Below, piece after piece: positions 35,620-64,000 of a DNA stretch of 64,000 nucleotides. The notes beneath the pieces are model-generated. The model ran no database searches, was not told where the DNA came from, and saw only the letters and a list, made by a program, of their open reading frames with translations. Position 1 is the first letter of the stretch. The number at the start of each line of letters is the position of its first letter. The position numbers were made by a program, and so were the translations under genes. Source of the DNA: Macrostomum lignano (lineage: Eukaryota); assembly GCA_002269645.1 (NCBI GenBank), contig NIVC01001306.1:186001-250000 (forward strand), read 5' to 3'.

Positions 35620-36500
35620 TGACAGGCAGGCAGACAGACAGAGAGACAGACAGACAGGCAGGCAGACAGGCAGGCAGACAGACAGACAGACAGACAGACA
35701 GGCAGGCAGGCAGGCAGGCAGACAGACAGACAGACAGACAGACAGACAGACAGACAGACAGACAGACAGACAGACAGACAGACAGACAGACAGACAGGCA
35801 GGCAGACAGACAGACAGACAGACAGACAGACAGACAGACAGACAGACAGACAGACAGACAGACAGACAGACAGATAGACAGACAGACACTAAGACAGACA
35901 GACAGACAGACAGGCAGGCAGACAGACAGACAGACAGACAGACAGACAGACAGGCAGGCAGACAGACAGACAGAAGGCAGACAGACAGACAGGCAGGCAG
36001 GCAGACAGACAGACAGACAGACAGACACTAAGACAGACAGACAAACAGACACTATGACAGACACAAAGACAGACAGGCAGGCAGACAGGCAGACAGACAG
36101 ACAGACAGGCAGACAGACAGACAGACAGACAGACAGACAGACAGACAGACAGACAGACAGACAGACAGACAGACAGACAGACACTAAGACACTATGACAG
36201 ACACAAAGACAGACAGGCAGGCAGACAGGCAGACAGACAGACAGACAGGCAGACAGACAGACAGACAGACAGACAGACAGACAGACAGACAGACAGACAG
36301 ACAGACAGACACTAAGACAGACAGACAAACAGACACTATGACAGACACAAAGACAGACAGGCAGGCAGACAGGCAGACAGACAGACAGACAGGCAGACAG
36401 ACAGACAGACAGACAGACAGACAGACAGACAGACAGACAGACAGACAGGCAGGCAGACATACAGACAGCCATACAGACAGACAGACAGACAGACAGACAG
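35620..36500. repeat. complex (CAGA)n microsatellite, mirrored at 63240-64000
   Basis: direct; contains duplicated interrupting blocks. Confidence 0.96.
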
Positions 36501-37969
36501 AGAAAATGCTCAACGTCCTCAATCGGAAACTAACTCTAATCTGCTGAAAAAAGGTAAATTCATAGTTGCCAAAGCAACAGTAATTAAATAAACAGGATAA
36601 AAGACTCTCAGGTCTGGTCTGCGCAATCAGAAACGGCAACTAAATAATAAGACGCAGGAGTTGCGCAAACAGTTCGTTTTTCTTCTTTTTCGACTCCGCC
36701 ACCCTGCGGCTGCCCCAGCAACCCTTCTGCATTGTTCTCCGTATCTCTGCCCTTTCAGTCTTAATCGTTCTCAAACTGCGGACTTTCTTGCGCAAGCAGA
36801 GCGAGGGAGTTCGCCAGTAGGCATTGACGCAATCAAAATTGCGTTGATCATTCCCTGTCTCCGTCTGATTCTCTCAAGCCAGTTGGTGACAAAACCTGCG
36901 CGTTATCAATCTCCAGCCGCCCCTGCTGAGTACGATGGAGCAGGTGCAGGGTCTTCTTCATAGCACTTTTTTCCGCGCTCATCACAGCCCTCCCGCTAAG
37001 AGCTGTCAAAGGCTCGGCAGTCTAATTCTCTTCGAGCTCTTGCTCCAATACCCAATTTTCCCCAATTAACGCGCAGCAGTAGGAAGCTAGTGAAAGGGTT
37101 TTGGTTTTAGAGGGGTTCGAGGGGAACCCCGCCTCAGGGAACACCTGTTACTTTCAGATTTCTTTCACTTATAATATATAAATTTGGGCTCCTTTTAGCC
37201 TGTGTCTGGGCGCCTGACAGGGAGCCTCTGTGCCCTCTCTGGCCTGGGACTGGCAATGGGAGACCCCAGATGGGAGGCGGCGAAGGTTCAAGCGGAGGGA
37301 AGCACAATCAGGCTCGGGGGGCTCAGAGACGACAGAAAGGACGGGGCAACCCCCCATCTCAAGCCCGCCCAGCCCGGCCAAAAACCCCTAATTGGTATCA
37401 GGTTATTTTCGCCGCGATTGTCTATGGTCTGAGGGGGCTGAGGGGGGCGACGATTTTTTCGGTCCCATTAATACCATAGACAGACAGACAGACAGCCTTT
37501 TTCTCTCTCGCTCGCTATCTATTCAGCAGGAAATGTGGGGGCCCATTTTCCTCTTTTAGTCCCGTCTCCTATTTCTGTATTTGCCACCTTCGGTGGGGGG
37601 AGGCGGAGGGGGAGTGGCACACACGCGCGTCTGTCCGCTGAGAGACCACCTGCTGCGCTGCTGTGCCCCCCCCCCCCGGGCTGGCAGGTGTCCCCTCAGG
37701 CAACTTTCGGGACTTCGGAGCTGTTGCACGAGGCGTGAGAAATTCGATAATTATTATATATTCTTAGAGGCATAATGAAATGATAAGAATTAGAAATTTT
37801 ATAAGCAAAGGAAATCAGAGGAGACTGTTGACTGACGAATAAGATTTTAAAATGAGCTTCTCTCGCAAGGGCTGACAGAAATTTTGACGAAAATTGATTG
37901 ACTTGACTGACAGTTAGTGGCTGGAATGAGCGATAGTTCTGAACAGCAGATATCAGACTGCGTACATGT

Positions 37970-61500: not shown

Positions 61501-64000
61501 CTAGAACTTCCTGACACAGTAGCATCTGACACATTTTATTGCGTTACCTATAACTTCCTGACACAGTAGCATCTGACACATTTTATTGCGTTACCTAGAA
61601 CTTCCTGACACAGTAGCATCTGACACATTTTATTGCGTCACCTATAACTTCCTGACACAGTAGCATCTGACACATTTTATTGCGTCACCTATAACTTCCT
61701 GACACAGTAGCATCTGACACATTTTATTGCGTCACCTATAACTTCCTGACACAGTAGCATCTGACACACTGACATGTACGCAGTCTGATATCTGCTGTTC
61801 AGAACTATCGCTCATTCCAGCCACTAACTGTCAGTCAAGTCAATCAATTTTCGTCAAAATTTCTGTCAGCCCTTGCGAGAGAAGCTCATTTTAAAATCTT
61901 ATTCGTCAGTCAACAGTCTCCTCTGATTTCCTTTGCTTATAAAATTTCTAATTCTTATCATTTCATTATGCCTCTAAGAATATATAATAATTATCGAATT
62001 TCTCACGCCTCGTGCAACAGCTCCGAAGTCCCGAAAGTTGCCTGAGGGGACACCTGCCAGCCCGGGGGGGGGGGGCACAGCAGCGCAGCAGGTGGTCTCT
62101 CAGCGGACAGACGCGCGTGTGTGCCACTCCCCCTCCGCCTCCCCCCCACCGAAGGTGGCAAATACAGAAATAGGAGACGGGACTAAAAGAGGAAAATGGG
62201 CCCCCACATTTCCTGCTGAATAGATAGCGAGCGAGAGAGAAAAAGGCTGTCTGTCTGTCTGTCTATGGTATTAATGGGACCGAAAAAATCGTCGCCCCCC
62301 CTCAGCCCCCTCAGACCATAGACAATCGCGGCGAAAATAACCTGATACCAATTAGGGGTTTTTGGCCGGGCTGGGCGGGCTTGAGATGGGGGTTGCCCCG
62401 TCCTTTCTGTCGTCTCTGAGCCCCCCGAGCCTGATTGTGCTTCCCTCCGCTTGAACCTTCGCCGCCTCCCATCTGGGGTCTCCCATTGCCAGTCCCAGGC
62501 CAGAGAGGGCACAGAGGCTCCCTGTCAGGCGCCCAGACACAGGCTAAAAGGAGCCCAAATTTATATATTATAAGTGAAAGAAATCTGAAAGTAACAGGTG
62601 TTCCCTGAGGCGGGGTTCCCCTCGAACCCCTCTAAAACCAAAACCCTTTCACTAGCTTCCTACTGCTGCGCGTTAATTGGGGAAAATTGGGTATTGGAGC
62701 AAGAGCTCGAAGAGAATTAGACTGCCGAGCCTTTGACAGCTCTTAGCGGGAGGGCTGTGATGAGCGCGGAAAAAAGTGCTATGAAGAAGACCCTGCACCT
62801 GCTCCATCGTACTCAGCAGGGGCGGCTGGAGATTGATAACGCGCAGGTTTTGTCACCAACTGGCTTGAGAGAATCAGACGGAGACAGGGAATGATCAACG
62901 CAATTTTGATTGCGTCAATGCCTACTGGCGAACTCCTCGCTCTGCTTGCGCAAGAAAGTCCGCAGTTTGAGAACGATTAAGACTGAAAGGGCAGAGATAC
63001 GGAGAACAATGCAGAAGGGTTGCTGGGGCAGCCGCAGGGTGGCGGAGTCGAAAAAGAAGAAAAACGAACTGTTTGCGCAACTCCTGCGTCTTATTATTTA
63101 GTTGCCGTTTCTGATTGCGCAGACCAGACCTGAGAGTCTTTTATCCTGTTTATTTAATTACTGTTGCTTTGGCAACTATGAATTTACCTTTTTTCAGCAG
63201 ATTAGAGTTAGTTTCCGATTGAGGACGTTGAGCATTTTCTCTGTCTGTCTGTCTGTCTGTCTGTCTGTATGGCTGTCTGTATGTCTGCCTGCCTGTCTGT
63301 CTGTCTGTCTGTCTGTCTGTCTGTCTGTCTGTCTGTCTGTCTGTCTGCCTGTCTGTCTGTCTGTCTGCCTGTCTGCCTGCCTGTCTGTCTTTGTGTCTGT
63401 CATAGTGTCTGTTTGTCTGTCTGTCTTAGTGTCTGTCTGTCTGTCTGTCTGTCTGTCTGTCTGTCTGTCTGTCTGTCTGTCTGTCTGTCTGCCTGTCTGT
63501 CTGTCTGTCTGCCTGTCTGCCTGCCTGTCTGTCTTTGTGTCTGTCATAGTGTCTTAGTGTCTGTCTGTCTGTCTGTCTGTCTGTCTGTCTGTCTGTCTGT
63601 CTGTCTGTCTGTCTGTCTGTCTGTCTGTCTGTCTGCCTGTCTGTCTGTCTGTCTGCCTGTCTGCCTGCCTGTCTGTCTTTGTGTCTGTCATAGTGTCTGT
63701 TTGTCTGTCTGTCTTAGTGTCTGTCTGTCTGTCTGTCTGTCTGCCTGCCTGCCTGTCTGTCTGTCTGCCTTCTGTCTGTCTGTCTGCCTGCCTGTCTGTC
63801 TGTCTGTCTGTCTGTCTGTCTGTCTGCCTGCCTGTCTGTCTGTCTGTCTGTCTTAGTGTCTGTCTGTCTGTCTGCCTGTCTGTCTGTCTGTCTGTCTGTC
63901 TGTCTGTCTGTCTGTCTGTCTGTCTGTCTGTCTGTCTGTCTGCCTGCCTGTCTGTCTGTCTGTCTGTCTGTCTGTCTGTCTGTCTGTCTGTCTGTCTGTC
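52514..64000 (-). repeat. right arm of the large inverted duplication (runs off the window)
   Basis: reverse complement of 35741-47217, near-identical outside repeat tracts. Confidence 0.97.
60088..60530 (+). mobile_element. mirror copy of the tRNA-derived SINE-like element
   Basis: CTCGACGAGCGGTAAAAGCGTGACTCTCGCGCCGCGACCCCAGGTTCGATTCC head, then body, (CAGA)n and 3' block. Confidence 0.55.

Follow-up and report, generated by a model that had tools for sequence, protein, structure and literature searches.

The window, as we call the whole stretch of 64,000 nucleotides that was analysed, corresponds to bases 186001-250000 of the 250,481-bp scaffold NIVC01001306.1 in the Macrostomum lignano assembly Mlig_3_7, and NIVC01001306.1:185849-211723 matches positions 1-25723 of the window with 100% identity. 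Beside ATG8 and carboxypeptidase genes, the window carries a large inverted repeat, the arms of which lie on two contigs joined by a run of N. The long contig that holds the rest of the window (contig A) has its final base at 47217, directly abutting the N run, and a short contig (contig B) stretches from 47730 to the end of the scaffold. Since position 1 of the window is base 186001 of a record of 250,481 bp, the window ends at base 250,000 and contig B has a length of 16,752 bp. The features of the region, in which the tandem arrays were obtained by tandem repeat detection, are the following.

35745..47217, plus strand: left arm, made up of the final 11,473 bases of contig A, with 99.6% reverse-complement identity to 52514-64000
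35621..36501, plus strand, mirrored at 63240-64000: (GACA)n array situated at the left arm's outer end
37973-38637, mirrored at 61104-61768: array of 14 copies of a 47-bp unit
39323-39533, mirrored at 60208-60418: (TCTG)n array
41429-41965, mirrored at 57779-58314: array of a 16-bp family
43741-44495, mirrored at 55178-56002: array of the 16-bp family
45797-46365, mirrored at 53376-53943: array of the 16-bp family
46018..47217, plus strand: error-rich tail of contig A, with 14 of the 40 differences between the arms
47218..47729, no strand: scaffold gap of 512 N, the sole N run in the window, its estimated size written by SSPACE
47730..52513, plus strand: spacer, the 4,784 non-duplicated bases of contig B
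47730..48175, plus strand: 3' fragment of a LINE, with about 120 C-terminal ORF2 residues including a frameshift, the 3' UTR and a terminal (GTAA)n
48779-50149: 21-bp satellite in the spacer, 66 copies
51462-52285: 36-bp satellite in the spacer, 24 copies
52514..64000, minus strand: right arm, the remainder of contig B, with at most 481 bp more from the window end to the scaffold end

The inverted repeat is present in the sequence far beyond chance. Megablast returned one alignment, of 52514-64000 with 47217-35745 (11,497 columns, 99.63% identity, 9 mismatches and 29 gap openings), and ungapped blocks of up to 2,705 nt show 100% complementarity. The near-perfect inverted arms of at least 11.5 kb that were put forward in the preliminary description, made from the sequence alone, are thereby confirmed, and so are the mirrored minisatellites: the six tandem arrays have equal periods and nearly equal copy numbers in both arms. 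The axis that had been placed near 49,870 agrees with the midpoint at 49,866, but the spacer is not itself mirror-symmetric, and the 'axis' is merely that midpoint; in fact, comparison of the spacer with itself and with the rest of the window revealed no inverted symmetry and no match elsewhere. A SINE, also described as mirrored, was not recovered, as neither the tRNA search nor the Rfam search (even at E<=1 over 47730-64000) gave a match.

The protein search with the 19 ORFs of at least 85 aa in arms and spacer gave no match, and that with the 23 ORFs of 60-84 aa gave none beyond the LINE fragment, which had been added separately. Pfam found nothing on the longest ORF of the inner arm. Considering that none of the arm ORFs has a protein match, the arms look non-coding. 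Copies of arms and spacer, such as might account for spurious links in scaffolding, were sought in the remainder of the window and at the locus of a paralogous carboxypeptidase gene (up to the equivalent of about 23.6 kb), and only weak matches of the 16-bp satellite were found.

Contig B begins inside the LINE, at residue 1085 of a 1204-aa ORF2. The fragment aligns to residues 1085-1203 of a 1204-aa protein (P0132). Over about 70 aa it is 93-96% identical to 14 M. lignano proteins, the majority with RNase H and some with RVT_1 or endonuclease domains; these matches were drawn from UniRef or MetaClust and are tied to no contig. A weak Pfam match to zf-RVT (E 0.036) was obtained as well. The LINE is a young, multi-copy non-LTR retrotransposon. 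As contig B starts within a family with many copies of 93-96% identity, a contig break is to be expected at this position. The upstream part of the LINE was found neither at the end of contig A nor elsewhere in the window, and consequently the join is not explained by way of other LINE copies. Moreover, the missing part of ORF2 is at least 3.2 kb and thus too long for a gap of 512 bp, unless the LINE copy is 5'-truncated. The two sides of the gap are neither continuous nor in frame, the left edge being non-coding arm sequence from the error-rich tail, and ORFs are listed across the gap (47044-47751 and 47153-47743) only because Ns were read as codons.

A closer inspection of the geometry is informative about the nature of the repeat. 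The match of the left arm extends to base 47217, which is the contig end, and the right arm extends to the window end, at most 481 bp short of the scaffold end. The homology is therefore limited on both sides by sequence ends, and on neither side do the arms stop at a biological boundary. Contig B consists of 4.8 kb of new sequence followed by about 12 kb that repeat the end of contig A and, when flipped, it forms a plain end-to-end overlap with contig A. The junction from the left arm to the spacer is absent from the sequence, as it coincides with the gap, and the junction between the right arm's outer end and a new flank is equally absent, as it coincides with the scaffold end; the assembly holds no right-hand flank beyond the right arm. 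These two junctions are precisely those that only a real inverted second copy would create. With both of them missing, the main proposal of the preliminary description, a very young fold-back duplication that could give rise to cruciforms or hairpin RNA, finds no direct support.

The differences between the arms were classified on basis of a MAFFT alignment (11,473 versus 11,487 nt). Of its 40 events, 10 are substitutions and 30 are indels, the latter adding up to 44 bp; the difference that had been noticed near 41070 is among them (T/- at 41072 and C/T at 41078). The large majority of the indels (24 of 30) are 1-bp events, 19 of these 24 within homopolymers of at least 3 and 21 concerning G or C. 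The substitution rate between the arms is 0.09% (10 in 11.5 kb); seven of the ten lie inside tandem arrays and only three in the 7,855 non-tandem bases. Counted per kb along the arm, the events number 5, 4, 0, 3, 1, 2, 1, 1, 6, 2, 8 and 6. Within 46018..47217 the left copy has the shorter allele nine times versus three, and two of the three non-tandem substitutions fall in this last 1.2 kb of contig A. An error-rich tail of this kind would be typical of a thinly covered end of a long-read contig. Considering the excess of indels over substitutions (30 versus 10), the homopolymer bias and the clustering in the contig tail, the differences between the arms resemble sequencing errors and not SNPs.

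According to the assembly record, Mlig_3_7 was built from PacBio reads (130x) with Canu 1.4 and polished by Pilon. Scaffolding was done with SSPACE 3.0 from Illumina and 454 read pairs, and 20-kb libraries existed. The assembly comprises 5,980 contigs in 5,270 scaffolds, of which REAPR considered only 64% of the bases error-free (assembly record). Most loci are present in it as three paralogous copies, the subgenomes diverge by 1.4-1.6% in SNPs, and many four-copy blocks have only 3-fold read coverage and hence represent excess copies (PMC10733133). The sequenced line DV1 is inbred. Its karyotype is unstable (assembly record; PMC10733133).

Taken together, we consider it probable that the mirror repeat is one stretch of the genome that was assembled twice, i.e. 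a false duplication, and not a biological palindrome. Canu would have left two end-overlapping contigs, the long contig A (to 47217) and the 16.8-kb contig B. In reverse complement, the first ~12 kb of contig B would repeat the last 12 kb of contig A, whereas its last 4.8 kb would extend contig A up to the multi-copy LINE. SSPACE would then have attached contig B to contig A in the wrong orientation, across an estimated gap of 512 bp, and the overlap would appear as a palindrome. The differences between the arms would be residual consensus errors of the long reads, which short-read polishing may have left in place because the reads map to whichever copy is correct at a given site. The identity of the scaffold, the geometry of the arms, the kinds of difference and the LINE with which contig B begins are observed; from these we infer that both copies stem from one locus and that the orientation of contig B is wrong.

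In published work, false duplications are marked by copies that a gap separates within one scaffold, and by contigs as long as raw reads in which read errors persist (PMC9516828). The gap at this locus indeed separates the two copies on one scaffold and abuts the left one, and contig B, with its 16,752 bp, matches a raw read in length, a comparison made independently of the run's own PacBio read-length distribution. As its alternative, the preliminary description had mentioned two haplotypes or paralogous contigs joined head-to-head across the gap, and the geometry and the types of difference fit such a join of redundant contigs. The suggestion that the contigs are paralogous does not hold, since the arms are about 15 times too similar for the subgenomes (1.4-1.6%, PMC10733133), and two haplotypes need not be invoked because DV1 is inbred. 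An unmerged contig overlap, or 'homotype' false duplication in which one sequence is represented twice, is the simplest reading.

The working of the scaffolder nevertheless provides a counterpoint, as SSPACE needs several consistent read pairs for each join. If the true order were collinear, properly oriented pairs that link the two contigs would put the gap at about -12 kb and contig B in the opposite orientation, so that the observed join is not expected. A false duplication consequently needs spurious links, for instance from repeats such as the 16-bp satellite family, members of which lie close to contig A's end in either orientation.

A real palindrome or fold-back in DV1, either very young or gene-converted, with arms of at least 12 kb and a spacer of about 5.3 kb, at the arm boundaries of which the assembler broke, would meet this point, and we regard it as an unlikely alternative. 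A read-pair join arises naturally from a real palindrome, and the join, presumably the work of SSPACE, puts the end of the left arm and the left end of the spacer about 0.5 kb apart, oriented just as a palindrome predicts. Identical inverted arms also fork the assembly graph, such that contigs can stop near the arm boundaries, and the unstable karyotype of DV1 is a setting in which fold-back rearrangements could arise. Of the features of a palindrome, the inverted arms of high identity are there (99.6% over 11.5 kb), but a contiguous sequence of arm, spacer and arm is not: neither diagnostic junction is crossed by any sequence. At a PacBio coverage of 130x, reads over a gap of 0.5 kb should have joined contigs A and B or carried contig B into the left arm. 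Contig B, however, takes in 12 kb of the right arm but 0 bp of the left one; it starts in the middle of the LINE ORF2, with no LINE sequence across the gap, and the scaffold goes no further than the right arm despite the 20-kb libraries. In addition, the long microsatellite and minisatellite arrays are nearly equal in length in both arms, which fits one locus better than two independent copies. That the scaffolder was right, and that DV1 has a palindrome with arms of at least 12 kb and about 100% identity around a 5.3-kb spacer beside the ATG8 and carboxypeptidase genes, is unlikely. Such a palindrome could have much longer arms, the remainder being collapsed into contig A. It would be either very recent or actively homogenised, would constitute a rare autosomal near-perfect palindrome in a karyotype-unstable genome, and could be a sign of the fold-back rearrangements that are to be expected when a neopolyploid carries an unstable large chromosome.

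It is very improbable that the arms come from different subgenomes (S, L1 and L2) of the neopolyploid, or from diverged haplotypes, that were scaffolded head-to-head. The three paralogous copies of most loci in the assembly make such an origin conceivable, and the carboxypeptidase gene of the window itself is found three times, as g1 to g3, each on a contig of its own, with g2 on NIVC01001463.1 and g3 on a 192.5-kb contig. Yet the measured divergence already contradicts it. The S, L1 and L2 subgenomes differ by 1.4-1.6% in SNPs (PMC10733133) versus 0.09% substitutions between the arms, merely three of the ten of which lie outside tandem arrays. Furthermore, the identity of the g2 locus (L001) with the window over 2.1-23.6 kb is no more than 92-96%, i.e. 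it shows 4-8% total divergence, in a comparison that covers the equivalent of the window only to 23.6 kb and thus stops short of the arms.

Like the arms, Foldback elements have inverted repeats with abundant tandem arrays, but a transposon of the foldback type, the very long terminal inverted repeats of which would consist in part of tandem subrepeats, is the least probable origin, considering that about 7.9 kb per arm are non-tandem, that no transposase or other protein match was found in arms or spacer save the unrelated LINE fragment, and that no second copy was seen in the window or at the g2 locus to the equivalent of about 23.6 kb. The outer ends of such an element, with any target-site duplication, would lie outside the window or at the scaffold end. 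A PacBio read with a missed hairpin adapter was ruled out as the origin of contig B, which has no internal symmetry, because a read of that kind would be a palindrome nearly devoid of a spacer.

Most likely, then, the inverted repeat is not a real feature of the genome, and cruciform, hairpin RNA or gene-conversion biology should not be built on it. As an artefact it would mean that, in the most widely used M. lignano reference, NIVC01001306.1 ends with about 12 kb of redundant and mis-oriented sequence. No false gene gain follows from it, as the arms are without a detectable gene. Homology delimited by a gap at one end and by a scaffold end at the other, together with differences dominated by homopolymer indels, would be a signature by which similar cases can be recognized.

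The sex chromosomes of primates have large, near-identical palindromes, the arms of which are kept alike by arm-to-arm gene conversion. The repeat at this locus resembles these in its inverted arms of more than 10 kb, its identity of nearly 100% and its non-symmetric spacer of a few kb. The primate palindromes, however, have been demonstrated on clones or reads that are contiguous, and they have distinct outer flanks and a doubled depth, whereas in M. lignano a gap takes the place of the junction of one arm with the spacer, and with the other arm the scaffold comes to its end. Canu contigs that are split at repeats may keep unmerged end overlaps. The likeness to these is found in an overlap, about one read length long, of a long contig's end with a short neighbour at whose own end lies a dispersed repeat, although unmerged overlaps normally remain on contigs of their own or enter a scaffold in tandem orientation. 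Finally, the false 'homotype' or overlap duplications described by Ko et al. 2022 (PMC9516828) are tandem whereas the copies here are inverted, which requires an extra orientation error of the scaffolder, but they share with the M. lignano repeat the gap between two copies on one scaffold, the contig of raw-read length and the differences that look like read errors.

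Aligned against itself by megablast, the window contains the inverted repeat reported in the preliminary description: positions 52514-64000 match 47217-35745 in a single minus-strand alignment of 11,497 columns at 99.63% identity, with 9 mismatches and 29 gap openings, and the arms share ungapped blocks of 100% complementarity of up to 2,705 nt. The minisatellites said to be mirrored were recovered as six tandem arrays with equal periods and almost equal copy numbers. The differences had been described as few: homopolymer indels, variant repeat units and rare substitutions. In all, 40 events separate the arms, of which 10 are substitutions and 30 indels. 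The window holds one run of Ns, 47218-47729, directly abutted by the final base of the left arm (47217), which pairs with base 52514. The 4,784 bases between this gap and the right arm show no inverted self-similarity and no match elsewhere in the window.

The geometry of the two contigs suggests that the repeat is probably a false duplication, i.e. one sequence assembled twice. Scaffold NIVC01001306.1 is 250,481 bp long and the window covers its bases 186001-250000, so that just 481 bp lie beyond. All sequence to the right of the gap (contig B, 16,752 bp) consists of 4.8 kb absent elsewhere in the window and, after it, about 12 kb that repeat in reverse complement the final 12 kb of the long contig to the left (contig A). 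The homology thus ends where the sequence ends, at the end of contig A and, to within 481 unseen bases, at that of contig B, which covers 12 kb of the right arm and 0 bp of the left. When flipped, contig B forms a plain end-to-end overlap with contig A, which gains 4.8 kb. A genuine inverted copy would have two junctions that are impossible for a single copy, one between the inner arm and the left end of the spacer and one between the outer arm and new flank. The former falls in the gap and the latter at the scaffold end, and every base of contig B is thus accounted for by a single collinear path, from flank through arm to reverse-complemented spacer.

The right edge of the gap falls partway through a reading frame. 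A 1204-aa M. lignano LINE ORF2 (with endonuclease, RT and RNase H domains) aligns through its residues 1085-1203 to positions 47730-48083, its only match in the window. Fourteen M. lignano proteins share 93-96% identity with the frame-corrected peptide, which marks the family as young and multi-copy, and such an element is a normal end point for a contig. Neither LINE sequence at the left edge nor continuity or frame across the gap was found, and the missing ORF2 (3.2 kb or more) cannot fit in 512 bp unless this copy is 5'-truncated. Stretches 93-96% identical to the fragment at 47730-48175 also occur within many M. lignano gene models in UniRef, whose annotations include a phosphodiesterase, a GPCR and a SET-domain protein; these older models appear to be host gene-retrotransposon chimeras.

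The differences between the arms resemble errors. Single-base indels number 24, of which 19 occur in homopolymers of at least 3 and 21 involve G or C. Seven of the 10 substitutions fall in tandem arrays, and the 7,855 non-tandem bases contain the other three. Two of these three are within the last 1.2 kb of contig A, one of the two only 11 bp from its end. That same 1.2 kb holds 14 of the 40 events, the left copy carrying the shorter allele 9 times versus 3. This pattern, unlike that of diverged copies, suggests errors of the long-read consensus that persist where coverage thins towards the end of a contig; polishing may have missed them because short reads align to whichever copy is correct.

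A counter-argument comes from the scaffolding. Mlig_3_7 is a Canu 1.4 assembly of PacBio reads, corrected by Pilon; SSPACE 3.0 then built the scaffolds, drawing on Illumina libraries (paired-end and mate-pair) and on 454 libraries of 3, 8 and 20 kb. An SSPACE join requires several concordant pairs. If the true arrangement were collinear, proper pairs should place contig B the other way round, at a gap of about -12 kb, and the observed join would need spurious links, whereas it would be the natural outcome of a real, young palindrome in the genome. We consider such a palindrome, the young fold-back duplication first proposed, less likely; both of its diagnostic junctions are absent. Repeats of the region include the following.

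29350-30300, 41429-41965, 43741-44495 and 45797-46365, plus mirror copies, both orientations: 16-bp satellite family
33010-34017: (TGTC)n array, about 252 units
35621-36501: (GACA)n array, about 220 units
48779-50149: minisatellite, 21 bp x 66
51462-52285: minisatellite, 36 bp x 24

The 16-bp family (CTTCACATTCCCCAAT and variants) occurs at least four times in 17 kb, in both orientations, and its arrays are places where read pairs could be mis-mapped when scaffolds are built. Close to half of contig B's unique part is taken up by the two minisatellites. Short reads map uniquely to only about 2 kb of this contig, which weakens the orientation call from read pairs. The (TGTC)n and (GACA)n arrays form a facing inverted pair, 1.6 kb apart in uninterrupted contig sequence, a local microsatellite structure independent of the scaffold gap. 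The duplicated arm has its outer limit between these two arrays or close to them.

The arms are satellite-rich and appear to be non-coding. The 42 ORFs from 25.7-52.6 kb had no protein match in a collection of 5.8 billion sequences, hits being obtained solely for the added LINE peptide. Rfam and tRNA searches of the arms gave no match, and the SINE reported earlier was not recovered. A GGTTCGAA box resembling a tRNA T-arm lies at 52420-52470, just inside the spacer and adjoining the arm boundary; it might be part of a tRNA-derived SINE, and ARAGORN and Rfam gave no match there.

Annotated genes lie in the left part of the window.

about 750-3670: ATG8-family gene, 117 aa
5870-7800, minus strand: 244-aa protein with no Pfam domain
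9849-14598, plus strand: carboxypeptidase E-like M14 peptidase Mlig009121.g1, 476 aa, 5 exons

The carboxypeptidase exons (9.8-14.6 kb) match M. lignano BOX15_Mlig009121g2 at 96%. Three genomic copies (g1 to g3) exist on three contigs, and g1 fits best: its locus, NIVC01001306.1:185849-211723 (GCA_002269645.1), is 100% identical to window 1-25723, whereas for the paralogous g2 locus (L001), collinear with window 2.1-23.6 kb, identity is just 92-96%. The three copies fit the three subgenomes of M. lignano, which a later study placed 1.4-1.6% apart in SNPs (PMC10733133). There is very little chance that the arms are themselves subgenome paralogues, since at 0.09% substitutions they are far too alike, and a similarly slight one that the repeat is a foldback transposon.

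A false duplication is thus favoured by the overlap geometry, the missing junctions and the error-like differences, by a contig B of read length that ends in a LINE, and by the failure of deep PacBio data to span the gap, supposedly 0.5 kb, from either end. The alternative in the preliminary description, contigs joined head-to-head across the gap, was essentially right, except that the contigs are too similar to be paralogous. The scaffolding reduced 5,980 contigs to 5,270 scaffolds, with 64% of bases error-free by REAPR. The same reading is favoured by the excess copies documented for this assembly, in which many four-copy blocks have just three-fold read coverage (PMC10733133), and by the published hallmarks of false duplication (PMC9516828).
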